This document shows, in pieces, positions 3,740 to 58,353 of a stretch of 64,000 nucleotides of DNA (position 1 is the stretch's first letter; each line of letters starts with the position of its first letter). Made by a program: the position numbers and the translations under genes. The DNA lies in the sequence record MZ501268.1, one strand, 5' to 3'. The notes below the pieces were generated by a model. That model had not been told where the DNA came from. It made no database searches and saw only the letters and a list, made by a program, of their open reading frames with translations.

Positions 3740-3767
3740 GGGAGGGCTTCGGTCCTCCCTTATGCCG
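3740..3767 (+). terminator. hairpin + TTATGCCG terminator
   Basis: GGGAGGGC-TTCG-GTCCTCCC, then TTATGCCG, then a T-run. Confidence 0.8.
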
Positions 3768-3849
3768 CCTATCTTTTTTTTTTGATCATTACTATGATTT
3801 GCAAGAAATCACCAGTAGTTCAATTAACCTAACCTGATAGGAGTTACCC

Positions 3850-5748
3850 ATGGCCGAAGCCACTTTAACACCACTACAACAGCTGAGTGCTGCCCAAGCA
3901 GCAGATCCAGCCAGTCGTGTTATGCTCATGAGCAAAGGCGAAATAGCTTACTTCCCACTGAGCGTCCTGACCGAACAACTGAACAGCATTATCTCCCTGG
4001 ATACGCTGAAGGTTGCTGATGGTCTGTGCCTCATTGGTCAGATCTTGTCGTTTGACGATCTGCGTAAATTAAAACCCCGGTCCGAAGGTGCACGTATTTC
4101 TTTGCGTGGCTGGAACACCAATACCTGCTATGGTGGTGGCGAGTTTATTGGCCATCTAACCAAAGGTACGGATGATGGCGGTACCATCGCTGCGGGATCT
4201 GGTTATTACTGGGAACGTGTGTGCAACGACCCTGCTGAACTTAATGTCACCCACTGGGGCGCTGTCCCAGATGGCAAGACTGACGCCGCACCGGCCATGT
4301 TGAATATGTACAACTGGTCATTTGCTAAGTTCCAGGGCGTGGGGATTCGATTCCCAGCAGGCACGTTCTTTGTTTCTCAGTTCAAGCCAGGCAAAGAACT
4401 GAACATCATCCGCATTACTGGCAACCCAACCAACTTTGGTTATCACGGTTCGACAATTCTGGTGTCGGATAATAATGATAACTTCATGATTGACTTGACT
4501 GCCCGTAAAGTGGAGTTGGCGAACTTTATCTTCCGTGGCACAACCACTGTTGCTGCACCAACGAAGAAAAGCATCTACAGCAACAACATTGCTGGCGGTC
4601 AGTATTTCAACGGCACCTGTCTGCGGTTTGAAAACATTGGCGGGAAATCCATCTGCCTGGTCGATACCTTAGACACTCACCTGAACCAGTGGTACGCATC
4701 CGGCTGTACGGGTGATGTGATTACTGCCACCTGGTCAGGGCGTGCTGCCGGGGTCTGGGATCACAGTACGGCGATTGAGCTTTCTAACTTTAACGTACAG
4801 AACGTGCGTGGAGCGAAAGTGTTCAACCTGCCACGTTGTACCCAGTCCTTCATGTATAATGGTTGGATTGAGCACTGTGATGACCCAGGCGATATCAACA
4901 ATGGCCAGTGGGTGATTACCGGTCTTAGCATCGAAGACTGTAAAGCGGCCTTGCGTGCGTCTTACTCTCGTCTGGTGGAAACTGCCCGTAGTCTGCAGTC
5001 TGGTTCGAAGATTGACTACTCCATCGACCCAACCATTGAAGAATGGCTGAGTGAATGGGAACGTGGCCGTGTTGATATTCAGAACTACGGCGTCTACACC
5101 GATGGCTCGATTGAGTTCGGTGCCATGATGTCCCGTAACAAACTGAGCAACTCTGCTGCGTCTGCGAAGTGGTTCCGTGTGGGCAAGTTCTTCTCGCCTG
5201 CTGAAGGTGACCAGATCGATGTCAACTTAATCGGTACCGGCAACTTCCTTTCGGTGGGTGCGGTCATTGAGAACGTTGACTCCGTTCGTCAAGGTGGTGG
5301 TAACACCCTGATTCGTCTGCAGTATAAGAGTAAAGCCATTGGCGCAACACTCATGCCTTTTGGTTCTTCTCCTATTCAGGCTGCGTTGTTTGTTAAAGAC
5401 GGATCGACGTTCCAGTTGTATGTGCAGCTGAAACCATATACCCGTAACGTGATCCCGGTGGTCACGGCAACAGGTATTACACACTTTGAGAAAGGAGTGT
5501 CGTTCTACTTCCGTCCTGACATCGCGGGATTAGCCGATGCTGAGATTGCTGACTTGGTTGGTGCAACTGTCATCAACGAACAGTGGTCGATTGGTCAGGC
5601 AGCAGGCGTAGGTGTAACCAATGAAGGTAACCTGGTATTGAAAGGCAAGATCGTTAACAATCACTTAGCAGTACAGGTGATGGTGAGCACGGCGGCCTAT
5701 GCAAAACCAGAGATCCGTTACCTTGAATTGAAGACTGAAGCCAAATAA
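3850..5748 (+). CDS. tailspike-like parallel beta-helix (pectate-lyase-like) protein, related to AmsF-type EPS proteins; putative depolymerase/adhesin
   Basis: GGGEFIG, DDGGTIAAG, NVTHWGAVPDGKTDAAPA and GIRFPAGTF motifs typical of tailspike/AmsF beta-helix N-terminal regions; own terminator. Confidence 0.65.
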   Translation: MAEATLTPLQQLSAAQAADPASRVMLMSKGEIAYFPLSVLTEQLNSIISLDTLKVADGLCLIGQILSFDDLRKLKPRSEGARISLRGWNTNTCYGGGEFIGHLTKGTDDGGTIAAGSGYYWERVCNDPAELNVTHWGAVPDGKTDAAPAMLNMYNWSFAKFQGVGIRFPAGTFFVSQFKPGKELNIIRITGNPTNFGYHGSTILVSDNNDNFMIDLTARKVELANFIFRGTTTVAAPTKKSIYSNNIAGGQYFNGTCLRFENIGGKSICLVDTLDTHLNQWYASGCTGDVITATWSGRAAGVWDHSTAIELSNFNVQNVRGAKVFNLPRCTQSFMYNGWIEHCDDPGDINNGQWVITGLSIEDCKAALRASYSRLVETARSLQSGSKIDYSIDPTIEEWLSEWERGRVDIQNYGVYTDGSIEFGAMMSRNKLSNSAASAKWFRVGKFFSPAEGDQIDVNLIGTGNFLSVGAVIENVDSVRQGGGNTLIRLQYKSKAIGATLMPFGSSPIQAALFVKDGSTFQLYVQLKPYTRNVIPVVTATGITHFEKGVSFYFRPDIAGLADAEIADLVGATVINEQWSIGQAAGVGVTNEGNLVLKGKIVNNHLAVQVMVSTAAYAKPEIRYLELKTEAK

Positions 5749-5772
5749 GTCTTCTGGTACCCTACTGTATAT

Positions 5773-5801
5773 GAGGAGGGGAAACCCTCCTCTTTATGCC
5801 G
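5773..5801 (+). terminator. hairpin + TTATGCCG terminator
   Basis: GAGGAGGG-GAAA-CCCTCCTC, then TTTATGCCG. Confidence 0.8.
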
Positions 5802-5828
5802 TCTTCTTTTATTAGACATTTTCTCACC

Positions 5829-5846
5829 TCTATATTACCAGGTTGC
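5829..5846 (+). promoter_or_regulatory. putative early (virion RNAP) promoter
   Basis: TCTATATTAC contains the phiKZ early consensus TATATTAC; intergenic, just after a terminator. Confidence 0.6.
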
Positions 5847-5944
5847 TAGACCGTTACAGGTCTTGTAGAAATGGACACAGAAACTAAGTTATATATCCCG
5901 CAGACCAAATAAAGTGTCTGCTAAATAAAGAAGAGGATTGCACA

Positions 5945-15610: not shown

Positions 15611-16015
15611 ATGATCTCGATCAAGGATACGCAAGACGACTCGTCGTTTAATGACGAACTGAAAGCCAAGTTGGTTGAGCTGTTGCCGGAAGATAACACC
15701 GGTATTGCTCACACCTACGAATTTACCGATAACGCCGAAGAGAACCCTTTCGAAGGTTACCTGATCATTAGCTCACCAACGCTGATGTACCAGTTCATTC
15801 GCACCACGAAGAATGATGACGGCGAAACCGAACATAACTACATGGGTCAGTATGTCCCGACTGTTGATGGTGGTGTTATGCCTGAGAACGGTCTGGGTCA
15901 GAACCTCAGCGATGGTGTCGGTGATCGTGTTGCTGAATTCGAAACCGTACTGCGTTCATTCCACCGTAAGGTGTTAGAGCGTCTTGGTCAGCCTGTGCCT
16001 GGTCAAACACTGTAA
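15611..16015 (+). CDS. hypothetical acidic protein (paralog of 16918..17319)
   Basis: RBS GAGGA; PFEGYLIISSPTLMYQF. Confidence 0.7.
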   Translation: MISIKDTQDDSSFNDELKAKLVELLPEDNTGIAHTYEFTDNAEENPFEGYLIISSPTLMYQFIRTTKNDDGETEHNYMGQYVPTVDGGVMPENGLGQNLSDGVGDRVAEFETVLRSFHRKVLERLGQPVPGQTL

Positions 16016-16020
16016 TTACC

Positions 16021-16051
16021 AGCCCGGGGGAAACCTCGGGCTATTATGCCG
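16021..16051 (+). terminator. hairpin + TTATGCCG terminator
   Basis: AGCCCGGGG-GAAA-CCTCGGGCT, then ATTATGCCG, then T-rich. Confidence 0.8.
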
Positions 16052-16122
16052 TCTTTTCTTTTTGTGTTGAAGATTACATAACCCCCACTTCATATACACA
16101 CTACCCTTTAAAGGAAATCATC

Positions 16123-16914
16123 ATGTCTGAACAGCAACCTAAGATTCCAACCCGATTGAAGATCAACGTCGCGGGTAACCACCCACTGCTTGCTACAGCA
16201 GCCGCAGCTGCAATCGCTGATGTGTTCACCAAATTGAACGTAGCCGGCGAGCGTCCGAGCCAGTGGTCTATCGACGGTGATTATGCTCAGCAACTTCTGC
16301 AAGAGCTTGCTGCAGACCAAAACAACACCATCGACGTTCACGCCGACCCATTGACAGTTGCAGTCATGCAGGGTAAAACCGAAGTGTGGGATTGGCCTAT
16401 CTGGAATAATCCAGACGAGCCATGGACAGCGCTGGTTACCGACGAACTTCGTGGCCTTTGGTCTTCTTTCACTTCAGTGCAAAAACGTGCGATTTATTAT
16501 ACCCTGACCGGTATGAACATCGTGGTTGAAGATGATGAAATGACTATTGCCAAGGCACAGGACATCATCAACGAATCTGAAGTCTATGTCGACCTGCGTA
16601 ATCCGCGTGAAGACGGTAGCTTTGCATCGGTAGTGGTTGACGGCAATGTCTATGCGGATGTGTTTGCCGCCATCGTCTTCCTGTATCAGAACGCCAGGGT
16701 TGAAGAACCGCTGCCGGCTGAAGAGATCACCAAAGAAGTGGTGTCGGGTCCGGCTGTAGATGCGAATGGTAAACCGATTGACTTTACGGTAGATCCTGAT
16801 GACCTTCCGTCAGTGAGCGCTGAGCAGCCAAGCTTTGCAGCGCCACAGGAAAATAACCCGGTATCATCCGGTAGTGTTACCCCTTACCACGGCAATGACT
16901 CTGTAGAGGATTAA
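16123..16914 (+). CDS. hypothetical acidic protein
   Basis: RBS AAGGA; 263 aa. Confidence 0.75.
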   Translation: MSEQQPKIPTRLKINVAGNHPLLATAAAAAIADVFTKLNVAGERPSQWSIDGDYAQQLLQELAADQNNTIDVHADPLTVAVMQGKTEVWDWPIWNNPDEPWTALVTDELRGLWSSFTSVQKRAIYYTLTGMNIVVEDDEMTIAKAQDIINESEVYVDLRNPREDGSFASVVVDGNVYADVFAAIVFLYQNARVEEPLPAEEITKEVVSGPAVDANGKPIDFTVDPDDLPSVSAEQPSFAAPQENNPVSSGSVTPYHGNDSVED

Positions 16915-16917
16915 TCC

Positions 16918-17319
16918 ATGCTCCCACGCTCTCAGCCTATCTCCATCTTTGATGTTGCTAACGTTCGCCTGACAGAAGAGTTAGTTGAACACTTCCGTAA
17001 AGACCTGAACGAAGCCGATAAGATCCACTCGGCCTATGCATTCAAAGATGGTTCGCGGTTCATTAAGCCTTTCAATGGCTTTCTGGTGGTTACGGGCCCT
17101 ATCCTGCAGTATCAGCTGTATAGTGGCAATGAAGCGATTACGGCTGATTGGGTGGGTTCCTTTACATACGACGGCGAAGGCAATGCCATCATCCCTGATG
17201 AAATGAAAACAGTCTTCACTGATGTGGATCGCAGCCGGGTAGCCCAATGGAAAGGCCTGGCGCAAGCATTACACTACGCTGTCTTAGAAGACATTAAACG
17301 AGGTGGGTATGGTCGATAA
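16918..17319 (+). CDS. hypothetical protein (paralog of 15611..16015)
   Basis: RBS GAGGA; PFNGFLVVTGPILQYQL. Confidence 0.7.
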   Translation: MLPRSQPISIFDVANVRLTEELVEHFRKDLNEADKIHSAYAFKDGSRFIKPFNGFLVVTGPILQYQLYSGNEAITADWVGSFTYDGEGNAIIPDEMKTVFTDVDRSRVAQWKGLAQALHYAVLEDIKRGGYGR

Positions 17320-18025
17320 ATCAGCACACGGGGATTGTCGTCCTCCGTTACCGCCTTATAAAGGTGGGATCTTTCTACGGGAAGGGAAGCAGGAAGCCGA
17401 GGCATTAATCGTTTGGCACCATGTCATGTCTACCACATGGGAATTATCTGCCGATGCTATCCCGGGCGAGTGTGCATTGCTTGTTCCCGATCATCAAATC
17501 TGGGCCTTTCATGACAACCTCTGGAGCCAGGATCTGCTTGGCACTGAACATGTCGCCAGATGCCGGCGAACAGGTGAATTCAATGCATTAGGGGTTAATT
17601 ACATTGATATCCCTAACCCAACTGAAGAAGCCGGTATCGTGTTCGGTGGTGAAGATCGTCGTGAATGGACTATCGGTAACTGGATTGCTCATTTAGGCGG
17701 GCGTATCAACGGCGCTGGTTATTTGGAGTTTGGTAGTGTGTACGCTTTCCATGCGATGCTTGTACAGATGTTGCGGGCTGACTTCAAAGGGGAAGAAGAA
17801 CTCCGGGTGACCATCGATGGTGGCGATGACAGCATGAAGGTAGTTGTCGCCATGTTGCTGGGTAGTGCGATGGGTGAGGGTGAATACACCCCAGGCCCTA
17901 ACCTGTTAGCATTAAAGGCAAAACTTGATCAGTTGCCTGGTGGTCTGGATAAGATCAAAGAGCGGGTTAGTCGTCTTGGTGACACACAGGTTATCATTGA
18001 TACACTGCCGCGGCGAAAGGGGTAG
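17303..18025 (+). CDS. hypothetical protein
   Basis: 240-aa ORF overlapping the upstream stop. Confidence 0.7.
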   Translation: MGMVDKSAHGDCRPPLPPYKGGIFLREGKQEAEALIVWHHVMSTTWELSADAIPGECALLVPDHQIWAFHDNLWSQDLLGTEHVARCRRTGEFNALGVNYIDIPNPTEEAGIVFGGEDRREWTIGNWIAHLGGRINGAGYLEFGSVYAFHAMLVQMLRADFKGEEELRVTIDGGDDSMKVVVAMLLGSAMGEGEYTPGPNLLALKAKLDQLPGGLDKIKERVSRLGDTQVIIDTLPRRKG

Positions 18026-18027
18026 GT

Positions 18028-19047
18028 ATGGATGAAGATAAGAAACTGGTTGAACTTGCACCCGGTAAGGTGGGTAAGGACGCGTACACTGGCGAGCCTA
18101 CTGTCGATTATATTGCGTTTGACAGAACTGGGTACGATGAACTGCTCGCGCTTTACCCGGAGTATGTCGTATTTATCCGCGACCCTAAGGCCGTCACCGA
18201 AGGCATCTCACTAATACCCACGGTAGACCTCAACGCCAAACCATTCCCGTGGATATTATCCGCCATTGGTCCGGTTGATATTGCCTTTAAAAAGATTGTC
18301 CTGGAAGCAGCAGGGCTCGATGAAATTGATGCGTTGTCCAAGCTTCTCAAAGATAATGAAGCTAACGCACGACAAGGAAACTATTTGATGACTACCGATA
18401 ACAAAAACGTAAACTATTTCGAACTGATCCGTGACTGGGGTAAAGCCCGTAACATCATCGGCGGGGGCTCTACACCTATTGATCAGTTTATCAAAGGCCT
18501 GACGGAAGCAGCTGAACTCTGGGGCAATATCCTGGGTGGCAAAACCAATAACCTGAAAGATGACATTGGCGATACACTGGTGTGTCTGACACAGTCTTAC
18601 GGTATCATCGACAGCATCAAAATCGAAGCTGCTGCGGATGACATCGACTCCTGGTTACGTGAAGCTCGGGTTGAATACCAAAATTACGGCGAGTGGGCGG
18701 ATAAGCGTCTGGCGTTATCTGTACTGCGTACGCTCGCTAATATCTCTCTGGAAATCGAGCTGGCCCAGTTTGAACCGCTGTATCACGATCCAGAAAGCCT
18801 GCAGGAACTCACCAGCAAATTGATTGCTGATTTGGTTGTGCTGGCTGAAGCCAAAGGCTGGACACTGGAAGAGTGCCTCGCTGAAGCGTACAACGACATC
18901 AAGGACCGTAAGGGTGTGATGTTCAACGGTGGGTTTGTGAAAGAAGCGACCCTGACTGTTGACTATGCCAAAGAGATGTTGGCCTCTGGAACAGTTGGCG
19001 GTGTGGGCGCAGATTATCTGAACGGATATATTGCCGCTAACAGCTAA
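18028..19047 (+). CDS. mazG: MazG-like nucleotide pyrophosphohydrolase with N-terminal extension
   Basis: WGKARNI..QFIKGLTEAAEL...KDDIGDTLVCL and TLEECLAEAYNDIKDRKG motifs. Confidence 0.8.
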   Translation: MDEDKKLVELAPGKVGKDAYTGEPTVDYIAFDRTGYDELLALYPEYVVFIRDPKAVTEGISLIPTVDLNAKPFPWILSAIGPVDIAFKKIVLEAAGLDEIDALSKLLKDNEANARQGNYLMTTDNKNVNYFELIRDWGKARNIIGGGSTPIDQFIKGLTEAAELWGNILGGKTNNLKDDIGDTLVCLTQSYGIIDSIKIEAAADDIDSWLREARVEYQNYGEWADKRLALSVLRTLANISLEIELAQFEPLYHDPESLQELTSKLIADLVVLAEAKGWTLEECLAEAYNDIKDRKGVMFNGGFVKEATLTVDYAKEMLASGTVGGVGADYLNGYIAANS

Positions 19048-19064
19048 ATGTAAATAATGCTACA

Positions 19065-19108
19065 CCTACATTACCTAAGGGATAGTGAAAGCTATCCCTT
19101 TTATGCCA
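19065..19108 (+). terminator. early-promoter-like motif immediately followed by hairpin + TTATGCC terminator
   Basis: CCTACATTAC (19065-19074), AAGGGATAG-TGAAAG-CTATCCCTT, TTATGCCA. Confidence 0.65.
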
Positions 19109-19221
19109 ACCTTTAACTGTCATCAATAGAACAATTCGCTTCTATTCACGAACTGAAAAAGCATCTTCAGTCTAATTAATTCACCCATCCATAAATGACA
19201 ATTGTGTCATAGGAGATCAAC

Positions 19222-19920
19222 ATGTTAAACGCATCTAAAGTTACTGTCGCTGCAAAGTCCTCTAAATGCACCATTGAGTATGATGGTGCCGACGGCAGCA
19301 CGCCACGCAGCCTGCAGTTCTCATTCAGCAATGAAAACCTGCATTCGGTAGCGAGACTGATCTTCATGTATCAGTTAAAGTTTGTTAATATCCCCGCAAC
19401 CAAAGCGGTGATTCCTTTTAAACACACGTGCGGTAAAACCGTGGTGGAAAGTAAATCGCCATTTACGTGGTCACTCGACAACGGTATGGTCAACTTCAAT
19501 CTTGATACCAATGTGTTTGTTCGCCATCATTGGGCGGGTCATGCTGATTTATTGGTGCCGGTACTGACCAGCAGTTTAGGGATCAATTTCAGCTATCACT
19601 TCATGGGTACCTTAAAAGGACATCCATACATCTTCGTGTACAAGTACGTAGATGCTTCGCGTGATACTGAAATTGTCATGTTGACCGACCGCAAGTCGTT
19701 TTATGTGGCGATGGCAAACAGCATGCTGATCGAACGGGGCTGGTACTCGTTCTTTGGGTATGACAAGGATATGTTGTGTCCTGACTGGGATGTTACCACA
19801 GCAAAACAACACCGTGGCGAACAGGCTGCTTTAGGTGATCGCTATCGTCATCTGGTTAAGCAGTATAATTCTGTTGACGATCTTTTAATGAATGGTGTCA
19901 TCGCAGAGGAACGCGCATAA
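19222..19920 (+). CDS. hypothetical protein
   Basis: RBS AGGAG; 232 aa. Confidence 0.75.
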   Translation: MLNASKVTVAAKSSKCTIEYDGADGSTPRSLQFSFSNENLHSVARLIFMYQLKFVNIPATKAVIPFKHTCGKTVVESKSPFTWSLDNGMVNFNLDTNVFVRHHWAGHADLLVPVLTSSLGINFSYHFMGTLKGHPYIFVYKYVDASRDTEIVMLTDRKSFYVAMANSMLIERGWYSFFGYDKDMLCPDWDVTTAKQHRGEQAALGDRYRHLVKQYNSVDDLLMNGVIAEERA

Positions 19921-19930
19921 CCCATACTGG

Positions 19931-19950
19931 GAGAGGGTATTTGCCCTCTC
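19931..19950 (+). terminator. hairpin, putative terminator
   Basis: GAGAGGGT-ATTT-GCCCTCTC; weak U-tract. Confidence 0.5.
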
Positions 19951-19973
19951 TCATACCAATCTAATTAATCTAC

Positions 19974-20405
19974 TTGTGGAAATTAACCATGACAACGTCG
20001 CGTACTGACTTGATCACTAATCGGATCAAAGAGGCATTAAATGGGGTCCGGGTACAAACCAGTGAACTGTATCATGAATCAACAGAGGTCACATCATTCG
20101 GTGCGGTGAAAACGGTGATGTTCTTTTGGAACGTAGCTGACAATGATTTAACTGCTGAGATGGTCGAGCGTGAAATCCTGGTCCGACTACAGGCTGAGAA
20201 CATTTACGTGGCCTTCCACAAAACCCGCCGTCGTGAAGGGGAGCGTTTAGTTACCGCCAGCATTCCCTGTAATCCGAATAACCCGAATTACACCTACGGT
20301 GGCCTGCGAGGTTTTACCCAGATGTGGCTACAGAAAAGCTTCGGGGCAACGAAAGACCGCCTGCAACAAAAGCAACGTGACAGTAATTTGTTTATTCGCC
20401 GTTAA
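19974..20405 (+). CDS. hypothetical protein
   Basis: 143-aa ORF; start possibly ATG 19989. Confidence 0.6.
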   Translation: MWKLTMTTSRTDLITNRIKEALNGVRVQTSELYHESTEVTSFGAVKTVMFFWNVADNDLTAEMVEREILVRLQAENIYVAFHKTRRREGERLVTASIPCNPNNPNYTYGGLRGFTQMWLQKSFGATKDRLQQKQRDSNLFIRR

Positions 20406-20416
20406 TTAAGGAATAC

Positions 20417-21145: not shown

Positions 21146-21174
21146 TCAACCATCTACTAAGAAGGAAACGATTC

Positions 21175-21900: not shown

Positions 21901-21934
21901 TAATTAAATAATAGACAGTGTAATCATATGCGAT

Positions 21935-21975
21935 AAGGGGGTCTGGTGAAAGCCATATCCCTTTTGGTTATGCTG
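21935..21975 (+). terminator. hairpin + TTATGCTG terminator
   Basis: AAGGGG..TGG-TGAAAG-CCA..CCCTT, then GGTTATGCTGTC and a long T-run. Confidence 0.65.
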
Positions 21976-22070
21976 TCTTTTTTTTTGTTTTTAAAAACTA
22001 GCGGCCACCATTATATGCAATTTACACGACACACTTTTTCATTTGACACACTTAGCAAGAGAGATAAGCA

Positions 22071-22588: not shown

Positions 22589-22594
22589 CATATC

Positions 22595-22623
22595 AGGCGT
22601 CCTTCGGGGCGCCTTTATGCCGG
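22595..22623 (+). terminator. hairpin + TTATGCCG terminator
   Basis: AGGCGTCC-TTCG-GGGCGCCT, then TTATGCCGG. Confidence 0.8.
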
Positions 22624-23827: not shown

Positions 23828-23859
23828 AGGGGTAGGGTCACACCTACCCTTTATGCCGA
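23828..23859 (+). terminator. hairpin + TTATGCCG terminator
   Basis: AGGGGTAGG-GTCACA-CCTACCCT, then TTATGCCGA. Confidence 0.75.
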
Positions 23860-25142: not shown

Positions 25143-25174
25143 AGAGCCAGGGGTTCGCCTCTGGCTTTATGCCG
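25143..25174 (+). terminator. hairpin + TTATGCCG terminator
   Basis: AGAGCCAGGGG-TTCG-CCTCTGGCT, then TTATGCCG. Confidence 0.8.
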
Positions 25175-27381: not shown

Positions 27382-27407
27382 GGGGAGGGAAACCTCCCCT
27401 TATGTGC
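27382..27407 (+). terminator. hairpin + TTATG terminator
   Basis: GGGGAGG-GAAA-CCTCCCC, then TTATGTGC. Confidence 0.7.
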
Positions 27408-28495: not shown

Positions 28496-28594
28496 CTGTA
28501 ATACCTGACATAAATCACTGTTTATATGTTAACCGGCCTCCTGGTTAATTCCGGGAGGCTTTTATAACCGTACGCTTTTTTATCGAGGGTTAGC

Positions 28595-34750: not shown

Positions 34751-34792
34751 CGGCATAAGAGAAGAGGCGTTTGCCTCTTCTCTGATTATGCG
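34751..34792. terminator. bidirectional terminator flanked by TTATGC on both strands
   Basis: CGGCATAA + AGAGAAGAGGC-GTTT-GCCTCTTCTCT + GATTATGCG, between convergent genes. Confidence 0.85.
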
Positions 34793-34802
34793 CTCTTTTT
34801 TT

Positions 34803-35120
34803 TTAACTTGAGGTAGGTTGGTCGGCAGTTAACGTAGAAGGGAAGCTTCTGTCTTTACCCCAGATAAGACGTATTCCGCCTGTACCTGGTGAATAGGCAC
34901 TCCCCATTCCGCCACCACCGCCATAATTACCACCGGTCCCACCGCTTGCGGTTTTGCCGCCAGATCCACCTTTACCAAACTGGGCAAATGCCCCCGCACT
35001 ACCGGATGTACTGCCGGTGGTAGCAAATAACTTCTGACCTACCACGGTAGTATCGCTATCCGGCAACGAACCTCCTCCAGAACCTGGCCGATAGCTTGAG
35101 TTTAGTAACAGTTCTAGCAC
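34803..35120 (-). CDS. short glycine-rich MLE-family protein (internally shortened relative of 23899..24504)
   Basis: MLELLL.., VGQKLFATTG, GGIRLIWGKDRSFP. Confidence 0.65.
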   Translation of the reverse strand: MLELLLNSSYRPGSGGGSLPDSDTTVVGQKLFATTGSTSGSAGAFAQFGKGGSGGKTASGGTGGNYGGGGGMGSAYSPGTGGIRLIWGKDRSFPSTLTADQPTSS

Positions 35121-41561: not shown

Positions 41562-41592
41562 AGGCCAGGTGCAAACCTGGCCTTTATGCCGG
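41562..41592 (+). terminator. hairpin + TTATGCCG terminator
   Basis: AGGCCAGG-TGCAAA-CCTGGCCT, then TTATGCCGG. Confidence 0.8.
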
Positions 41593-41751
41593 TTTAGGGA
41601 ATGGTACCCGTTATGCCACTATCAATTAACCAAAACGTAGAAATGGTAGATTGGCCTAACGTAGGGCCAATTACCTAACCGACATACTGCGCTGGGGATC
41701 CAAGTGGTCCCCGGGCAACCAATTCAATTTAACCGAATGTAAGGCACCATT

Positions 41752-43874: not shown

Positions 43875-43880
43875 TTTTGT

Positions 43881-43904
43881 GAGGGCTAGGATATCCTAGC
43901 CCTT
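43881..43904 (+). terminator. intrinsic terminator
   Basis: GAGGGCTAGG-ATAT-CCTAGCCCTT, then a T-run. Confidence 0.75.
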
Positions 43905-43924
43905 ATCTATTCATTCTTTTTTTT

Positions 43925-44410
43925 TTGCTTGAGGTGTCTATGCACGTGATCACGATCGGTGCCGTTGCTATTCTGATCTTCATTATTTTCTTGTGCATAT
44001 CAGAGTGGCGTTTAAAAGTCAGCAAGAACCTTATCTTCCGCGAAGTCACCCGGATTGCGTATTCCATTATCCGCTACACAGAAGTGAAACAGATCACCCC
44101 CGAGATCTATTTGATCGCAGCAGAGCTTCAGGGGAGAATGGTGAAAGTAGGGAACTTCTCCATTACCCAGAAAGACCGTGAAGTCAACATGACTATTGCC
44201 AAGTACATTTCAATCTTTGGTAATCAGCGTGTGCGTGACCCAGTGATCTTACTGCATGTCATCGCCAGACGGTTAAATGAGTTCGATGGGATATCAGCTA
44301 AATCCCTGGTATCGACAAACGGACGCCTGGAGCTCGTTATAGGGCGTGATGATGCAACAGACTATGATCGTGTCATCTATCGCTTCAACTCACCCCAGAC
44401 GTTGTTTTAG
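43925..44410 (+). CDS. N-terminally membrane-anchored hypothetical protein
   Basis: TM segment VITIGAVAILIFIIFLCI; likely start ATG 43940 (RBS GAGGT). Confidence 0.7.
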   Translation: MLEVSMHVITIGAVAILIFIIFLCISEWRLKVSKNLIFREVTRIAYSIIRYTEVKQITPEIYLIAAELQGRMVKVGNFSITQKDREVNMTIAKYISIFGNQRVRDPVILLHVIARRLNEFDGISAKSLVSTNGRLELVIGRDDATDYDRVIYRFNSPQTLF

Positions 44411-44411
44411 G

Positions 44412-44445
44412 CGGCATAAGGGGCAGGGTTTCCCCCGCCCGCTTA
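44412..44445 (-). terminator. terminator for the convergent - strand operon with TTATGCCG on the - strand
   Basis: CGGCATAA followed by a GC-rich imperfect hairpin. Confidence 0.65.
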
Positions 44446-48510: not shown

Positions 48511-48867
48511 GTGACCACGTTATTTGCCGGTGCACCAACTAAGCTTCCAATGATGGACTTATCTGCAATCATGGATCCCGATAAGGATCTGGAGTCTCGG
48601 CTGAAACGGAAGTTGCTGTTGACTTTCGTTTGCCATCGCCGGAAACCTCGGGCCAGTGCTGATGAACTTAATCGTGCACATGACCTGTGTGAGGATTCGG
48701 CTGATGTTGAGCAATGCCTTGATTATATTACTCGCATGAGTCCTGAATTCAATGAAGCTTACGATGGTGTTGATATTGAGTGTGTAATGGAAGTCATCGG
48801 GCACACGCCTGAATGGTTACGTTACGGCTCAGCTATCGAAATGTGGACTGATCTCAAGCAGTTGTAG
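48511..48867 (+). CDS. hypothetical protein
   Basis: 118-aa ORF in operon. Confidence 0.6.
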   Translation: MTTLFAGAPTKLPMMDLSAIMDPDKDLESRLKRKLLLTFVCHRRKPRASADELNRAHDLCEDSADVEQCLDYITRMSPEFNEAYDGVDIECVMEVIGHTPEWLRYGSAIEMWTDLKQL

Positions 48868-48906
48868 GGCATAAGAGGAGGGCTAGTGCCCTCCTCTACT
48901 TTATGC
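48868..48906. terminator. bidirectional terminator flanked by TTATGC on both strands
   Basis: GGCATAA + AGAGGAGGGC-TAGT-GCCCTCCTCT + ACTTTATGC. Confidence 0.85.
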
Positions 48907-48915
48907 TCATTTTTT

Positions 48916-49713
48916 TTAATTGAGCTCTTTTGCCAACTTCAACGCAGAGTTGTTCAGTGCAGTACCCGTGGTAATAAAGAGGGTATGACACACACTGTAC
49001 AGGTCTGCTGCACGTGCTGTATCCAGCATGACCTTCGCCAACTGATCCAGTTCACCTTTATTAACGGTGAGGTCACCAGACTCAATCTGGGTGAAGATCA
49101 AGTCAGACAGTTCGGCCACACGTTGTACCGCGGCGTTAAAGTCACGAATCTGACCGCGCTTAAGCATGCCGATCAGTTTGTTGAAATCGTCGTACACGGT
49201 GGTGAATTCAGTCAGGTTCTGGAAGCGAGCAGCGAAGCTAACCTCAGTAACATCTTTTCCACCCAGGGACTTGCCGAGGACAGATTCAACTTTACCCAGA
49301 ATCGCTTTGTCGACATTTGGCGCGTAGGCCACACTGGCTTTCTTAGAAGCAACCTGGGCCAGCCAAGTCTGCAGCTTATTAATGTGGTCAGACTCAACCA
49401 TGGTGCAGAACGCCCGTGCGGTAGCCAGGTTATCAACCCATTCGCGGTAGGTGATGTTCAGACGAGCTGGCTGTGAAATCGTGCGATCCATGAAGTCAGC
49501 GTAGTTACGCGTCTTTAATGCTTTCGCCAATGGGCTCAGGTCAGCCATGATCAGTTCTTTCGTGGTACCGTAAGCACGGTCTTGGAAGAACTTCTTGACA
49601 CCATCAAAAAAGTTACGAATCGGAGCGATGATGTTCAGTGCTTCGAGGCCGGCACCAGATGACTCACGCAGTCCTTGGTAATCGGCTTCTAGGTTTTCAA
49701 TGTTGTACGACAT
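48916..49713 (-). CDS. putative virion head protein (phiKZ gp153-like position)
   Basis: AGLEA cleavage-type site near the N-terminus (phiKZ-like head protease cleaves after A-x-E); located between RNase H and UvsX. Confidence 0.55.
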   Translation of the reverse strand: MSYNIENLEADYQGLRESSGAGLEALNIIAPIRNFFDGVKKFFQDRAYGTTKELIMADLSPLAKALKTRNYADFMDRTISQPARLNITYREWVDNLATARAFCTMVESDHINKLQTWLAQVASKKASVAYAPNVDKAILGKVESVLGKSLGGKDVTEVSFAARFQNLTEFTTVYDDFNKLIGMLKRGQIRDFNAAVQRVAELSDLIFTQIESGDLTVNKGELDQLAKVMLDTARAADLYSVCHTLFITTGTALNNSALKLAKELN

Positions 49714-49794
49714 ATGTACTCCGTGAGTTAAAAGTAATCTATTACATAAGATGACTTATTATGAAGGTATTATTAATTAAAAGGACCGCACACA

Positions 49795-51180
49795 ATGTTG
49801 TCATTCGGTGAATTTGTTGAGAAGTCACGCCCTATTCGTCCTTTCTTGAATATTGGCGCTGGCTTCGATATCCCGACCGGAAGCTACCGTTTCGGTAAGC
49901 ACGGCGAATCTATTCTTAATGGTGGTCTTGCACCGTTCATTGCCATCGTAGGTAAAGGTAACACCTTTAAGACAGCGATTGGTTGTTTCATGATGACCCG
50001 CGTCCTGGAGCGCTACAGCAACTCTAACGGCCTGCACTACGATACCGAGTGTACGTTCAGTGCTGATCGTTTAACCAGCCTGACAAGTCGCCTGGGGCCT
50101 GATGCTGCTGCAGACTGGCTGGCAGCCGACCGCATCTATTTAACTGACGACTCGGTTATTAAAGGTAACCAGTGGTTTAAGAAGTCGGTACAGGAATATG
50201 CAGAAGCCAAGAAGAAGGCCAAGCAAGGTACCTTACCGTTCGTGGATAAAGATGGGAACCTGATTCCTTATCCGTTCCCGACAGTGAACTTCGGCGACTC
50301 CATGTCTGAGATGAAATTCGACGACCTGGAAAAGAACTACGCCAAGATGGAAATCGGCCAGGGTGAAATGCAAACCGAAGCCATGCGTGTGTCAAACGCC
50401 AAACGCATGTTAATCGAGAAGACCCAGGGCTATGCGAATGCCGGCGGGATGTATGTCATCATGACAGCACATCTCGGTAAAGAACTGAACATGGACGGGA
50501 AACCTCAAGAGAAGAAAACCACCTTTATGAAACAAGGTGACAAAATCTCTAAGGTTCCTTCTCAGATTCTGTCTCTACCAAACAACGCCTGGGAAATCTC
50601 CACCGGTACGGTTCTGATTGACAAGAACACCAAAGAGTGGCTGTACCCGAAACAGGGTCGTAATGACGTGGATACCAATGGTAACCCGGACATGATCACT
50701 CTGGTGGCGAAGAACCTGCGTGGTAAGAACGGGCCTTCTGGGGTACCGTGGGAGTTCGTGATGTCACAGTCTGAGGGTCTGCTTCCTTCCTTGACTGAGT
50801 TCCATTACATCAAGAACAACGGACGTTACGGCCTGGGCGGCAATGACCGTAATTATTATGTTGAGTTGTGCCCGGACATCAAATTGCAGCGCACCACTGT
50901 GCGTGATCGCATCGACAGTCACCCCGAGTTACGTCGTGCATTAGAGATCACCATGGAAATGTGTCAGATGCGTTTCTTGTGGCATACCCGCGATCCGAAG
51001 TACAACATGACTCCTCAGGAACTTCGTGAAGGTCTGGAGAAGAAAGGGTACAACTGGGAGCAGTTACTTAACACCCGTGGGTTCTGGACGTTTGAAGAAG
51101 ACAAGCATCCATTACCATTCTTAAGCACAATGGATCTACTCCGCATGTATCATGATGAGTACCGCCCATACTGGCTGTAA
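49795..51180 (+). CDS. uvsX: RecA/UvsX-like recombinase (phiKZ gp152-like)
   Basis: NIGAGFDIPTG, Walker A GKGNTFKT, YDTE, FGDSMS, AKNLRGKNG. Confidence 0.85.
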   Translation: MLSFGEFVEKSRPIRPFLNIGAGFDIPTGSYRFGKHGESILNGGLAPFIAIVGKGNTFKTAIGCFMMTRVLERYSNSNGLHYDTECTFSADRLTSLTSRLGPDAAADWLAADRIYLTDDSVIKGNQWFKKSVQEYAEAKKKAKQGTLPFVDKDGNLIPYPFPTVNFGDSMSEMKFDDLEKNYAKMEIGQGEMQTEAMRVSNAKRMLIEKTQGYANAGGMYVIMTAHLGKELNMDGKPQEKKTTFMKQGDKISKVPSQILSLPNNAWEISTGTVLIDKNTKEWLYPKQGRNDVDTNGNPDMITLVAKNLRGKNGPSGVPWEFVMSQSEGLLPSLTEFHYIKNNGRYGLGGNDRNYYVELCPDIKLQRTTVRDRIDSHPELRRALEITMEMCQMRFLWHTRDPKYNMTPQELREGLEKKGYNWEQLLNTRGFWTFEEDKHPLPFLSTMDLLRMYHDEYRPYWL

Positions 51181-51194
51181 GTGTACCCGCTGTG

Positions 51195-51214
51195 GGAGAG
51201 GGATAACCCTCTCC
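51195..51214 (+). terminator. hairpin terminator with variant tail (TTATACCG)
   Basis: GGAGAGGG-ATAA-CCCTCTCC, then TTCTTATACCGTC. Confidence 0.65.
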
Positions 51215-51259
51215 TTCTTATACCGTCAGTAGAGGGAAATAAGCTAAATAGGAAGCAGT

Positions 51260-55643: not shown

Positions 55644-56096
55644 TTACTTTGGTTTATTCGGTGTCATGATGTCTTCGTACTCGATGTGCTCACTCCCCTG
55701 ACGGGTTTCGCCATCTTTAAAGTTAGGGGCAGGAAGCTGATTAGCATCGGGCGCTGGGGTGGAGATCGGTGCATGGGAGCGATCGTCTTTCCCACGCAGT
55801 GCAAAGCCCCCGGCTGCCAGGACTTCTTTTACGGCACCAATGATCAGTGCGCCTTGAGTCTCGTCGTTGTCCTGGGCTTTCTGTTCCAAGTCAAGACGCT
55901 GACGGTTGATAATGGACTTGTCAATGTCACCCATCGCAGTCAGGGCGATCTTCAACATCTTCGGATCTTGGTTACTGGCTTTAATTGGTGCACCAGACTC
56001 ACCGTCTTTCTCATCAAGGATATCATCGACAATACCCAATCGACGCATTTGCATACGACGCATTAAGGCCGCATCGTCTAATTCATAATCAGCCAT
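55644..56096 (-). CDS. hypothetical protein
   Basis: Start moved to ATG 56096 (RBS GGAGG). Confidence 0.65.
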   Translation of the reverse strand: MADYELDDAALMRRMQMRRLGIVDDILDEKDGESGAPIKASNQDPKMLKIALTAMGDIDKSIINRQRLDLEQKAQDNDETQGALIIGAVKEVLAAGGFALRGKDDRSHAPISTPAPDANQLPAPNFKDGETRQGSEHIEYEDIMTPNKPK

Positions 56097-56118
56097 GAGG
56101 CCTCCAGAATAAGTCACA

Positions 56119-56136
56119 CCTACATTATCTAGGTGA
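56119..56136 (+). promoter_or_regulatory. putative early promoter CCTACATTAT-N4-GTGA
   Basis: Motif match in a divergent intergenic region. Confidence 0.6.
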
Positions 56137-56693
56137 TCGTAAGTGTATTAAAAGGAATCGTTATGCGCTTTTTTAAAAAGCTGGCACTCAAACGCTGCAT
56201 GGCGATGTTGCGTGAAGCAAGGGGTGATACCTTTACTGCGCAAGAAAGCATGAACGTTCTTCAAGTGCTTGATACCGTGATTTCTACGGACGGCATCATA
56301 AAATATTTCGATGTTCGAGTTTCATTGTCAATCATGATGGAAACGCAGCTTCCAAATGCCATTGCGATGATCGACCTGATCACCGAAATAAATCGCCATA
56401 TCCAAAAAGATATTGATTCAACTCTTCCCGATCACGGTGCGTTGTTCTCGGAGTTTCGTGACATCCGACGCATCACGTTGTATGACTGGTTATCTGATAA
56501 TCAGGGGAATGTCGTAGATGCTCCACAATTTTATCAACTGTTTATTAATCAGTTGAATCAATTAATTACCGTTATTGTGAACTGTGAAGACCAACCAACT
56601 CAACAGTACTATCTGCGTAGATTGCAGCCGATCTATAATGAATTACTGGAAACAGTGTATGCGGCGTTACACTGCGGGTTGTTAAGTCTCTAA
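56133..56693 (+). CDS. hypothetical protein
   Basis: Likely start ATG 56163 (RBS AAGGA). Confidence 0.65.
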   Translation: MIVSVLKGIVMRFFKKLALKRCMAMLREARGDTFTAQESMNVLQVLDTVISTDGIIKYFDVRVSLSIMMETQLPNAIAMIDLITEINRHIQKDIDSTLPDHGALFSEFRDIRRITLYDWLSDNQGNVVDAPQFYQLFINQLNQLITVIVNCEDQPTQQYYLRRLQPIYNELLETVYAALHCGLLSL

Positions 56694-56704
56694 GGGGTTA
56701 TCAG

Positions 56705-57169
56705 GTGTCCGAAAAGAAAAAGCCAAAGGATCAACTCACGGAGATGTTGACCGACCCAACGAAACAGATGCGTCAAACCGCTGATCCGTTGGTAAGACTC
56801 TGGCGACAATTCATGGCACGGGAGCTTGTCACTCCCTCTAAGTGGGGTGCCTTGATTGCTGAACACATCACCCGACTACGACGCTTTAAAGAAATGGATG
56901 TACAAGCAGTCGGTACTGAACGGGGTAATTTAAAGAAAGCGTTTATTGAAAAGAATAAAATGTCTTTCTCGGCGTTCCAACGTGGTTTACGTTTCCTGGG
57001 ATTTATGAAGGTTACGATCATCATCATTGCAGAGCGACCTTCTGGAGAGAAAGTCGAAGAGCGTGTTGAGATCGAGTTAATTAAGCGGATGTTTACACCA
57101 GGAAAACCGCCGACCACACCGCCTACTGAGAAAGACAAGCCCGACCCGAACAAACCGCCTGAGAAGTAA
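56705..57169 (+). CDS. hypothetical protein
   Basis: GTG start after RBS AAGGGG; basic. Confidence 0.65.
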   Translation: MSEKKKPKDQLTEMLTDPTKQMRQTADPLVRLWRQFMARELVTPSKWGALIAEHITRLRRFKEMDVQAVGTERGNLKKAFIEKNKMSFSAFQRGLRFLGFMKVTIIIIAERPSGEKVEERVEIELIKRMFTPGKPPTTPPTEKDKPDPNKPPEK

Positions 57170-57184
57170 CGCGATACTATAGAA

Positions 57185-57204
57185 GATGGGACTTCGGTCC
57201 CATC
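57185..57204 (+). terminator. hairpin terminator
   Basis: GATGGGAC-TTCG-GTCCCATC with a displaced T-run. Confidence 0.7.
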
Positions 57205-57235
57205 GCTATTATTCACTCTTTTTTTTTGTTGAGGA

Positions 57236-58312
57236 TTGATCATGGCAGGAGTGGACATCGGACAATCGATCTCAAACTCGATTAAGTCAGCAAACTCGGT
57301 AACACAAAATGCCGTGAACAAAGTACAGTCTACGTTTGTTGGCGGCATTAAAGAAGATCTCGCATTAGTCGATGCCAAAACCAAATCGGCAGTGCAAACC
57401 CTGAACTCTTATAAGGATACTGCGATCGGTGCAGTAGATGGGTTCATTAAGAAGGTCTCTAACGGCGCTCTAAGCATCTCTGAGCTGTCTAGCATCATCG
57501 ATGTACGTAATGGCATCACTGTTGACTACAACAGGCTCTACAGGCGTTTAGGAGACGCTGCTGGCTTCCCTATGGATTCGATCATTGGGATGACTGCTGA
57601 GATTAAGTTGGAAGTGGCTAACGTATTAGACGCTTACTCCAGCAAGAACTATACCTACCTGCTCAATAAAGCCGGGATCAAGATTGGGGTCAATGACGCC
57701 AGCTACCAGGCGATGCAATTGATCTCCAGTGTGATCAGTAAGATGTCGGACAGTGATTCTGATTTCAGTAACATTGTCGATGAAGCCGCGCAGCTTGCTT
57801 TACTCAATGTCATGGTGCGTAATGCCGTGCAAGTTGGGTTGTGGTCTGGCATTGATACCTTGCTTGCTCAGTATACCGACAAAGCAGCGGGAATCACTAA
57901 TCTGGCGAACTGTGCGCAGATTGCAATTCGTGCAGGGGATGTGTACACCACCAAGTACATCGTCGATACCGTTGGCATTGCCCGAGTAACAGCATTGAAC
58001 ACGGACTTCTTGTCTGACATGCTGCGTTACTTCAAATTCAAATCGGATGTCACAACGTCACAGTACGCCGACTACCTGAACACGATGGTCTACTCATTAC
58101 AGCAAGCTGACAGTGATTGGGCGTACATCCAGTTTGGGACGGTCAGGGCATTACGATTAAAACCGTTCACCCAAGCCTCTACTGATGCAATCACCTTGTT
58201 TGAGAATACTGATGAGTATCGCCAGCATGTGATGATCGCTCGGACATACCCGTCAAAAGACTTGATGGATCTGTTAAAGCAAAGTTATCCCAACATGGCA
58301 TTGGTACAATAA
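57236..58312 (+). CDS. putative virion structural protein
   Basis: 358 aa; RBS GAGGA; convergent with the baseplate/tail genes as in phiKZ-like genomes. Confidence 0.55.
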   Translation: MIMAGVDIGQSISNSIKSANSVTQNAVNKVQSTFVGGIKEDLALVDAKTKSAVQTLNSYKDTAIGAVDGFIKKVSNGALSISELSSIIDVRNGITVDYNRLYRRLGDAAGFPMDSIIGMTAEIKLEVANVLDAYSSKNYTYLLNKAGIKIGVNDASYQAMQLISSVISKMSDSDSDFSNIVDEAAQLALLNVMVRNAVQVGLWSGIDTLLAQYTDKAAGITNLANCAQIAIRAGDVYTTKYIVDTVGIARVTALNTDFLSDMLRYFKFKSDVTTSQYADYLNTMVYSLQQADSDWAYIQFGTVRALRLKPFTQASTDAITLFENTDEYRQHVMIARTYPSKDLMDLLKQSYPNMALVQ

Positions 58313-58314
58313 AC

Positions 58315-58353
58315 CGACATAGAGGAGAGGGCAAACGCCCTCTCCTTATGCTG
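58315..58353. terminator. bidirectional terminator
   Basis: CGACATA + GGAGAGGGC-AAAC-GCCCTCTCC + TTATGCTG. Confidence 0.8.

Follow-up and report, generated by a model that had tools for sequence, protein, structure and literature searches.

The GC-rich hairpins followed by TTATGCCG that recur in the genome of Erwinia phage AH06 are very probably transcription terminators of the kind known from phiKZ and the other Chimalliviridae, a finding that is solid, although not new in kind. The hairpin and TTATGCCG signals themselves are real and far from chance. The DNA analysed here (the window, 64,000 nt) corresponds to bases 62001-126000 of AH06 (MZ501268.1; 100% identity), a jumbo phage of the Agricanvirus group that is related to phiKZ. 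Split beta and beta' genes of the phiKZ-type virion and non-virion multisubunit RNA polymerases (vRNAP and nvRNAP) are annotated in AH06, and the beta-like protein of its nvRNAP shares 31% identity with phiKZ gp71-73 across 98% of its length. A preliminary description of the window had treated the layout as unrecognized; a hairpin followed by such a box had in fact been described for phiKZ in 2024.

RESULTS

Hairpins followed by a conserved box

All 17 positions given in the preliminary description were verified to hold a GC-rich hairpin and then the box or a close variant. The exact box, TTATGCCG or TTATGCTG, lies at 3760, 5794, 16044, 21968, 22615, 23851, 25167, 41584 and 58346, and close variants at 19101 (TTATGCCA), 27400 (TTATGTGC), 34786 (TTATGCGC) and 48901 (TTATGCTC). 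The reverse complement is found across the same hairpin, as a minus-strand box, at 34751-34758, 44412-44419, 48867-48874 (TTATGCCC) and 58315 (CTATGTCG). Two variant sites listed in Table 1, those with TTTATAACCG and TCTTATACCG, were absent from the earlier list.

Table 1. Predicted terminators and related hairpin elements in the window (energies in kcal/mol; T-run entries give length and position)
Position	Strand	Location	Hairpin and box	T-run	Fold	Other features
3740..3783	+	after AH06_83	8-bp GC stem, UUCG loop, TTATGCCG	T10, 3774, 5 nt after box (T-run subclass)	-16.1, z = -2.6	Ea35-70 orthologue retains hairpin and TTATGCC
5773..5801	+	after tail spike gene AH06_84	hairpin, TTATGCCG			early-promoter-like CTATATTAC next at 5830
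16021..16051	+	after AH06_106	GAAA-loop hairpin, TTATGCCG		-18.6	Ea35-70: loop and stem altered, box unchanged
19077..19108	+	2 nt past early-promoter-like CTACATTAC (19066-19074)	hairpin, TTATGCCA			Ea35-70 sequence identical
21937..21986	+	after AH06_114	imperfect hairpin, TTATGCTG	T9, 21978 (T-run subclass)
22595..22622	+	after AH06_116	UUCG-loop hairpin, TTATGCCG
23828..23858	+	after AH06_118	hairpin, TTATGCCG			Ea35-70 orthologue: other stem, same box
25144..25174	+	after thymidine kinase gene	hairpin, TTATGCCG		-18.9	early-promoter-like CTACATTAT next at 25192
27382..27407	+	after protease gene AH06_122	hairpin, variant TTATGTGC			annotated AH06_123 GTG start (27404) within box
28535..28569	+	after AH06_124	hairpin, variant TTTATAACCG
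34751..34804	both (two-way)	convergent AH06_134 (+)/AH06_135 (-)	single hairpin; minus TTATGCCG (34751-34758); plus TTATGCGC and T-run (34786-34804)	T9, 34796		three compensatory stem-pair differences from Ea35-70
41562..41591	+	after AH06_142	hairpin, TTATGCCG			conserved in Ea35-70
43879..43926	+	upstream of AH06_149	hairpin, degenerate TAT box	T10, 43917, ~10 nt past stem		T-run subclass without TATG
44412..44443	-	end of minus-strand AH06_150, convergent junction	hairpin, TTATGCCG		-22.5, z = -3.7
48867..48917	both (two-way)	convergent AH06_154 (+)/AH06_155 (-)	minus TTATGCCC; plus TTTATGCTC	T8, 48910		Ea35-70: loop differs, box retained
51192..51225	+	after RecA-like gene AH06_156	hairpin, variant TCTTATACCG			Ea35-70 identical
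57186..57227	+	just 5' of AH06_168 ribosome-binding site	hairpin, TTATTCACTC	T9, 57219		T-run subclass, box reduced to TTAT
58315..58365	both (two-way)	convergent AH06_168 (+)/AH06_169 (-)	plus TTATGCTG; minus variant CTATGTCG	T9, 58357	-22.4, z = -4.5	one copy of a palindromic cassette

Counted against dinucleotide shuffles, a control that had been proposed with the preliminary description, TTATGCYG is strongly in excess of chance, with 18 occurrences in the window versus 3.58 +/- 1.84 expected and none of 100 shuffles reaching 18. TTATGC alone is barely enriched (42 versus 32), so that the signal resides in the longer box and in its linkage to the hairpin. An unbiased count of the 5-mers that follow perfect compact GC hairpins in the whole AH06 genome gave 54 TATGC (1.63 expected) and 57 TTATG (2.0 expected); hairpins followed by TATG number 64, versus 5.9 expected. 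As in phiKZ-type terminators, the stem-loops are GC-rich, with stems of ~6-12 bp and short loops (tetraloops in 64 of 101 candidates), and the box lies directly 3' of the stem, at a stem-to-TATG offset of 0-4 nt. Folding energies of the elements range from -13 to -22 kcal/mol; for the hairpins with z-scores the energies are -16 to -22 kcal/mol and z lies between -2.6 and -4.5. The stems of most copies are unrelated to one another in sequence. Over 48 sites the box positions read T 43, T 48, A 48, T 48, G 45, C 48, C 37 or T 9, and G 39, followed by W-Y-Y.

The related phage Ea35-70 (~82% identical DNA) offers 48 orthologous sites that can be anchored on the box, and every one of them has a folding energy of -9 kcal/mol or lower. 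On either side of the TATGC anchor the two phages agree at 88-94%, versus 45-65% in the spacer around, while 46% of the loop positions have changed and several stems carry two to four compensatory pair changes. Judging from this comparison, the box is under selection, and the stems vary by compensatory substitutions that retain pairing rather than sequence.

Placement relative to genes and T-runs

Genome-wide, ~58 elements lie past genes in sense orientation, again as in phiKZ, here 24-75 nt beyond the stop codon. Tandem plus-strand regions hold 30 sense elements versus ~3 antisense, and at no fewer than 10 of the 19 convergent junctions a single hairpin is boxed on both sides. This bears out the earlier proposal of a strand-specific box located 3' of the stem, and its link to gene ends. 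About 25 of the ~58 elements are at convergent gene ends, with no gene downstream, and at least five junctions in the genome share a near-identical palindromic cassette. Some 10 tandem elements are placed merely 19-26 nt before the next start codon. The box was also looked for in the divergent, promoter-bearing spacers of AH06 and was absent from them.

The displaced T-run proved equally real, mostly 10-15 nt after a GC hairpin. Runs of eight or more T fall on the plus strand in 21 of 23 cases in the genome, and 19 of these 21 are 16 nt or less past a GC hairpin. They mark a conserved and less well described subclass, with a T8-11 run ~10 nt past the hairpin, that is confined to the main coding strand. 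The layout is non-canonical, as had been claimed: a scan for a hairpin plus five T in eight bases missed all eight hairpins with a box between 16000 and 35999, and overall found 19 sites versus 16.9 expected.

The same element in other phages

In the phiKZ study of Putzeys et al. (2024, microLife, PMC10914365), the terminator consensus from ONT-cappable-seq, present at 61 sites, is a hairpin followed by TTATKYYGT, and ARNold classes these motif terminators as intrinsic. A similar motif, terminator motif A (n = 59), is known from 201phi2-1 (PMC11512511), and eight 201phi2-1 elements of the hairpin-box type all terminated in a reporter assay. The assay used Pseudomonas chlororaphis without infection, so that the host RNAP was at work, and the elements reduced downstream reporter expression no less than lambda T0 did (PMC11512511). 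When the published 201phi2-1 termination sites were placed on EU197055.1, eight of eight fell on position 7 of the post-hairpin TTATGN[Y], although 3' ends from ONT-cappable-seq are accurate to a nucleotide or two and do not separate termination from processing.

The motif could be re-derived in the phiKZ and 201phi2-1 genomes. Hairpins followed by TATG are enriched over expectation in phiKZ (84 versus 9.9), 201phi2-1 (76 versus 7.3), Ralstonia phage RP12 (112 versus 10.5), Serratia phage Moabite (59 versus 4.8), Klebsiella phage FBKp24 (35 versus 5.5) and Erwinia phage RisingSun (13 versus 3.6). Enrichment is weak or unclear in Vibrio phage USC-1 (8 versus 3.1), and hairpin-TATG counts gave no signal in the Seoulvirus SPFM17 (6 versus 5.2) and Bacillus phage AR9 (2 versus 1.8). 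In every lineage with the box, TATG is its sole invariant part.

DISCUSSION

The AH06 elements resemble those of phiKZ and 201phi2-1 in most respects: a GC-rich stem-loop leads directly into TTAT-K-Y-Y-G-T, the sites lie in spacers past genes, two-way forms separate convergent genes, dozens of copies occur per genome, and the phages belong to one family with virion and non-virion multisubunit RNAPs. They differ in that AH06 has a more sharply defined box with more G and C (TTATGCCG versus TTATG-N-Y in phiKZ) and in the purine-rich arm, which in AH06 is mostly on the 5' side and in the published phiKZ consensus on the 3' side. The host genus also differs. A search of RNA sequencing runs found none that contains the AH06 sequence, and we infer the 3' ends of AH06 RNAs from relatives with ~30% RNAP protein identity. 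What stands of the preliminary description is a termination signal in place of a U-tract, by homology to the mapped 3' ends of 201phi2-1 and the phiKZ consensus; its alternative, a promoter as the main role, does not. Its assignment of the signal to the phage RNAPs is a supposition, the eight 201phi2-1 elements having worked with host RNAP.

In host intrinsic terminators the U-tract directly follows the stem. The AH06 elements share with bacterial intrinsic terminators the GC hairpin, U residues near the stem, a predicted release point fixed 7-9 nt past the stem and a predicted pyrimidine 3' end; moreover, elements of the relative 201phi2-1 function with host RNAP. In contrast to a canonical tract of ~7 U straight after the stem, the AH06 box offers 3 U in 8 nt and a G/C-rich distal half (GCCG), the long T-run, where present, begins ~10 nt past the stem, and a simple U-tract rule misses these elements. 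The bacterial process has been modelled as a hairpin, a U-tract and a bubble-edge rule (HUB; bioRxiv 10.64898/2026.05.29.728758). If RNAs end at position 7, AH06 has C at position -2, a mismatch to the R-2 of the bubble-edge rule.

These features suggest how termination may proceed. A GC-rich stem of 6-12 bp, usually with a tetraloop and with the box T-TATG-C-Y-G within 0-4 nt, would form as an RNA hairpin behind the polymerase, and the polymerase would let go of the transcript inside the box, with the position-7 pyrimidine as the likeliest end. The box would then occupy the 7-8 nt stem-to-release stretch of the bacterial U-tract. The stem-adjacent U-U-A-U may make the upstream hybrid weak enough for invasion by the hairpin, and the pyrimidine-then-G at positions 7/8 may act as a stop resembling the elemental pause. 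The long T-run, starting ~10 nt past the stem, is probably outside the released RNA. We put forward as a conjecture, and a rather doubtful one, that the TATG core is read during elongation by the RNAP beta-like non-template-strand pocket that recognizes late promoters, such that a polymerase-specific, promoter-like pause replaces the U-tract; the T-run ~10 nt on would be a second conserved component, either a signal to the virion RNAP or an easily melted downstream duplex that aids forward translocation. If true, this would tie promoter and terminator specificity together in a non-canonical multisubunit RNAP. A literature search found no paper addressing the termination mechanism of these phage-encoded multisubunit RNAPs.

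A point against termination as the best explanation is that genes downstream of the ~10 close tandem elements could be transcribed only by read-through or re-initiation, neither of which follows from a simple strong terminator. An element with two functions could account for it, the hairpin terminating and the TATG of the box (G = +1) restarting nvRNAP so as to reset transcription of the next gene. The phiKZ late promoter is indeed TATG with G as +1 (Yakunina et al. 2015, PMC4666361; IUCrJ 2026, PMC12809450), the identical tetranucleotide is present in 45 of 48 AH06 boxes and is what the box has in common between lineages, and the ~10 tandem elements, with a ribosome-binding site and start codon in 19-26 nt, leave no space for a separate promoter. 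The late-type start sites of phiKZ (66) are also about as many as its motif terminators (61). We nevertheless consider this unlikely, and reject a terminator-coupled promoter as the main role, though a side role at tandem genes is conceivable. Whereas phiKZ late promoters need no hairpin (the model late promoter p119L has none upstream) and depend on downstream sequence, AH06 boxes mark gene ends, and the ~25 of ~58 that run into an opposing gene from its 3' side, with nothing to transcribe, retain the box equally well. Divergent spacers, which necessarily bear promoters, are without it. In addition, TATG alone is insufficient for nvRNAP initiation, TATG upstream of genes shows no sense-strand excess once the terminators are masked (63 versus 58), and the phiKZ and 201phi2-1 transcriptome papers, in the passages searched, report no start sites coinciding with terminators.

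It is more improbable still that the elements serve 3'-end processing or stability, single-stranded UUAUGCCG being cut by a host or phage endoribonuclease while transcription continues and the hairpin shields the new 3' end. A conserved single-stranded sequence adjoining a protective hairpin would suit a nuclease site, read-through into close downstream genes would be natural, and sequenced 3' ends fit cleavage as they fit termination. Against this, the 3' end lies ~7 nt from the stem, a distance typical of hairpin-driven release, elements of this type reduce downstream reporter expression in uninfected cells, and ARNold assigns those of phiKZ to the intrinsic class. The box is found in phages of Pseudomonas, Ralstonia, Erwinia, Serratia and Klebsiella and is missing from the Salmonella Seoulvirus phages; it thus tracks phage lineage, not host RNases. 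That the elements are DNA-level features, namely dispersed palindromic repeats (REP- or MITE-like) or protein-binding sites merely located in spacers, is scarcely credible: the nearly identical cassettes at several convergent junctions and the fixed genome polarity of the long T-runs would fit, but one-way elements carry the box on the 3' side of the transcript (30 sense versus ~3 antisense), most copies have unrelated stems, and stem divergence preserves pairing, not sequence.

T4-type phages carry PeSL cassettes, in which an early promoter and a stem-loop occur together in dispersed repeated copies. At 5773-5838 and 25144-25200 of the window a terminator-like stem-loop similarly lies 20-35 nt from an early-promoter-like sequence, although order, motifs and polymerase differ from those of PeSL, and the AH06 analysis gave no evidence for a recombination role. 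The reverse order at 19066-19108 looks like a promoter-terminator pair, from which a very short RNA would be expected.

Read as phiKZ-type terminators, the elements would supply ~58 predicted transcription-unit ends for AH06 and other Agricanvirus phages, and the three annotated gene starts that fall inside a box look wrong. The simple rule of a GC hairpin followed by TTATGCCG catches ends that standard terminator finders miss. Nucleus-forming jumbo phages that infect at least five host genera (those named above for the box) have the box in common, and the combination of a shared box, the late-promoter core TATG and a strand-specific T-run turns termination by phage-encoded multisubunit RNAPs into a testable question.

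Results

The preliminary description of this DNA had claimed a recurrent non-canonical layout, in which GC-rich hairpins are followed directly by a TTATGCYG-type sequence (the box; hairpin and box together form the element) and then by a displaced U-tract. The window contains 18 copies of TTATGCYG, as compared with 3.58 ± 1.84 in dinucleotide shuffles, none of 100 shuffles reaching 18; enrichment of the 6-mer TTATGC is only marginal (42 versus 32). In twelve of the 18 copies a GC stem of 6–10 bp, capped by a tetraloop, stands directly 5′ of the box; the remaining six are within coding sequence or have no hairpin. The element hairpins have folding energies of −16 to −22 kcal/mol (z = −2.6 to −4.5). 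Every coordinate listed in that description holds an element or a variant differing by one or two bases. A generic hairpin-plus-T-tail scan of window 16000–35999 flagged none of the eight box-bearing hairpins and found no excess of canonical terminators (19 versus 16.9). The layout is thus real, non-random and non-canonical. Sigma-70-like promoter matches in the same interval are, if anything, depleted (19 versus 28.5 ± 5.5 in shuffles), in keeping with a phage that makes no use of the host RNA polymerase.

By megablast, window 20000–28000 matches Erwinia phage AH06 (MZ501268.1, 275,293 bp, genus Agricanvirus, host Erwinia billingiae) at 100%, the next relatives (RAY, Simmy50, Ea35-70 and others) standing at ~82% identity. 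The window corresponds to record positions 62001–126000. In a search of sequencing runs, AH06 sequence turned up in DNA runs only, probably those of the source samples. The annotation of the record lists split β and β′ genes for two multisubunit RNA polymerases of the phiKZ type, and phiKZ gp71–73 share 31% identity with the AH06 non-virion β-like protein. Rfam returned no family match within the window. Across the whole genome, a motif-free count of over-represented 5-mers behind perfect compact GC hairpins yielded TATGC 54 times (1.63 expected) and TTATG 57 times (2.0 expected). When TAT[G/A]C was used as anchor and a strong hairpin was required ahead of it, 65 candidates emerged, ~58 of them convincing, with the box 0–4 nt from the stem; base counts by position over 48 sites were T(43) T A T G(45) C C(37)/T(9) G(39) W Y Y.

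Gene ends were defined by ORF stop codons and by the 19 minus-strand gene blocks of the record annotation, which create 19 convergent junctions. The box lies 24–75 nt downstream of a co-oriented stop codon. In tandem plus-strand regions 30 elements are sense and ~3 antisense. In total, ~25 elements are directed at the 3′ end of a gene on the other strand, and at ≥10 of the 19 convergent junctions a single hairpin carries boxes on both flanks (GCATA–hairpin–TATGC), so that the box is, as had been proposed, strand-specific and 3′ of the stem. TTATGCCG is absent from all 19 divergent spacers, which must hold promoters. This placement is that of a transcript-end signal, not of a promoter.

Several further features were seen around these elements (listed below). 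Three annotated start codons fall inside boxes, and better starts bearing a ribosome-binding site occur ~16–20 nt 3′ of them. A near-identical palindromic cassette (GGAGAGGGC, a 4-nt loop, GCCCTCTCC, boxes on both flanks) is found in at least five places and a second cassette also recurs; such repeats are possible recombination substrates. One minus-strand hairpin in a plus-strand-only gene region is possibly a terminator facing antisense transcription, or else a remnant. In divergent spacers, a conserved TTAAAAGGA-type stretch (e.g. TTAAAAGGAATCGTTATG) stands ahead of many start codons and resembles an extended context for ribosome binding. Finally, the early-promoter-like motif CTAYATTAY, similar to the phiKZ early TATATTAC, has 26 plus-strand and three minus-strand copies in the genome, often 20–35 nt past a hairpin–TTATGCCG terminator. 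In one case, identical in Ea35-70, an early-promoter-like CTACATTAC is separated by 2 nt from a terminator hairpin and TTATGCCA; this pair would produce a very short transcript or work as an attenuator, and it is reminiscent of the promoter-proximal terminators reported in phiKZ.

Positions of individual features in AH06
Feature	Position	Detail
Annotated start inside box	window 27404	AH06_123, GTG
Annotated start inside box	record 51017 (outside window)	AH06_60, ATG
Annotated start inside box	record 140140 (outside window)	AH06_179, ATG
Better start, example	window 27420	ATG after GGAG
Palindromic cassette	window 58315–58365; record 59430/59458, 156538/156564, 232429/232457, 255943/255969	
Second cassette	record 5937/5966, 175902/175931	
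Minus-strand hairpin + TATGTCG	window 41680–41717	between AH06_142 and AH06_143
TTAAAAGGA-type stretch, divergent spacers (examples)	window 56096–56163, 49713–49795	
CTAYATTAY	window 5830, 6728, 19066, 25192, 28959, 37334, 56120	
CTAYATTAY	record 208578	ahead of non-virion RNA polymerase β gene
Early-promoter-like motif and terminator	window 19066–19108	
Stems with compensatory changes (examples)	record 5966, 27527, 78045, 96787, 145444	four swapped pairs in the last

Every element was aligned to its syntenic location in Ea35-70. All 48 box-anchored orthologues fold at −9 kcal/mol or better. Box flanks (−1, +5, +6) are 88–94% identical and the outer spacer 45–65%, a position comparison onto which a few minus-strand sites (e.g. 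record 5937, 106418, 255943) were not projected, their alignments showing the box kept. Loop positions differ in 46%, and several stems carry two to four compensatory pair changes; stem changes were judged from aligned examples, and ungapped pair counts inflate ‘broken’ pairs through indels. Across these alignments, selection keeps stem pairing rather than stem sequence, and the box as sequence.

Hairpins followed by TATG were counted in further genomes and compared with expectation. In SPFM17, USC-1 and AR9, the words after hairpins are T-rich or TTAT(T/A) instead. The box consensus varies with lineage (TTATGCyG, TTATGyyG, TTATGny, TATGny), TATG and a pyrimidine two bases later being all that is common.

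Hairpin–TATG counts and T≥8 runs per genome
Genome	Hairpin–TATG observed	Expected	T≥8 runs, plus	T≥8 runs, minus
AH06	64	5.9	21	2
Ea35-70	64	6.0	19	3
phiKZ	84	9.9	15	3
201phi2-1	76	7.3		
Ralstonia RP12	112	10.5	0	6 (one strand only)
Serratia Moabite	59	4.8		
Klebsiella FBKp24	35	5.5		
Erwinia RisingSun	13	3.6		
Salmonella SPFM17 (Seoulvirus)	6	5.2	13	0
Vibrio USC-1	8	3.1		
Bacillus AR9	2	1.8		

The displaced T-run is likewise borne out: ~90% of the plus-strand T≥8 runs of AH06, Ea35-70 and phiKZ lie ≤16 nt past a GC hairpin, mostly at 10–15 nt. The usual order is hairpin, TTATGC, 2–8 further bases (typically ending in C) and T8–11, and nine of ten AH06 runs are kept in Ea35-70. These runs show a strong strand bias in the five genomes tabulated. 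In AH06, a run of T≥6 no more than 20 nt from the box accompanies 10 of 41 plus-strand elements and none of 24 minus-strand elements; at convergent junctions, a polymerase making the minus-strand transcript would therefore meet the T-run before the hairpin. No association of T-run terminators with the ends of early transcription units was seen: in lists read by hand, the nearest terminator downstream of 19 early-promoter-like sites was of the T-run type in ~7 cases and plain in ~8, the rest being other.

Discussion

Putzeys et al. (2024; PMC10914365), who mapped phiKZ transcript 3′ ends by ONT-cappable-seq, describe a stem–loop followed by a TTAT region as common to 61 terminators, with the consensus BCCYCCCCHWWDGGGRRGGBYTTATKYYGT. 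According to a study of 201phi2-1 (PMC11512511), motif A of that phage (n = 59) ‘strongly resembles’ the phiKZ motif. The AH06 box, TTATGCCG(T), conforms to TTATKYYGT, and the AH06 elements are therefore the Agricanvirus member of this class, that is, terminators of a described jumbo-phage type. The 201phi2-1 study gives coordinates for eight termination sites that were also assayed with a two-colour reporter in uninfected P. chlororaphis. Termination occurred at every one, surpassing that of lambda T0 at four and equalling it at two. Since the host was uninfected, this element type needs no phage polymerase or phage factor. When placed on EU197055.1, each of the eight sites shows a GC hairpin with TTATG, TTATA or ATATG behind it. 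The published 3′ base, mapped with a precision of a base or two, is the pyrimidine at box position 7 in all eight (RNA end ...UUAUGN-Y), with G next in seven. The box thus spans the interval from stem to release point and occupies the position of the U-tract.

It may be that U-U-A-U beside the stem forms a weak upstream hybrid open to hairpin invasion, and the conserved 3′-terminal pyrimidine, with G as the next base, would resemble the elemental pause signal, which a recent preprint reports to be necessary at bacterial intrinsic terminators (bioRxiv 10.64898/2026.05.29.728758). The fit is only partial: AH06 has C at position −2, not a purine.

The preliminary description had proposed a sequence-specific termination or 3′-processing signal for the phage RNA polymerases, or a terminator-coupled promoter. 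That proposal is borne out in part: gene-end position, orientation, conservation and the match to mapped terminators support termination, and boxes at convergent ends argue against a promoter as the main function. The box core is nevertheless the phiKZ late-promoter motif, TATG, which may capture the elongating phage polymerase in a promoter-like manner; as our literature search found no paper linking the two TATG motifs, this is not our main reading. The box may also double as a restart promoter at tandem genes: ~10 elements leave just 19–26 nt to the next start codon, and those genes therefore rely on read-through or re-initiation. Restart is unlikely to be the main function, given the good preservation of boxes at convergent ends, their absence from divergent spacers and the hairpin-less p119L promoter; free TATG upstream of genes, with terminators masked, is balanced (63 sense versus 58 antisense), a count that is uninformative for a 4-mer.

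If release occurs at box position 7, the T-run is downstream DNA and no part of the released transcript. Its role could be to facilitate forward translocation or to affect polymerases that have read through, or it could be specific to one of the two phage polymerases. In the literature, as far as its text was accessible, we found no description of this T-run subclass or of its strand bias. The AH06 elements pose a mechanistic question: why TATG, and why a T-run.
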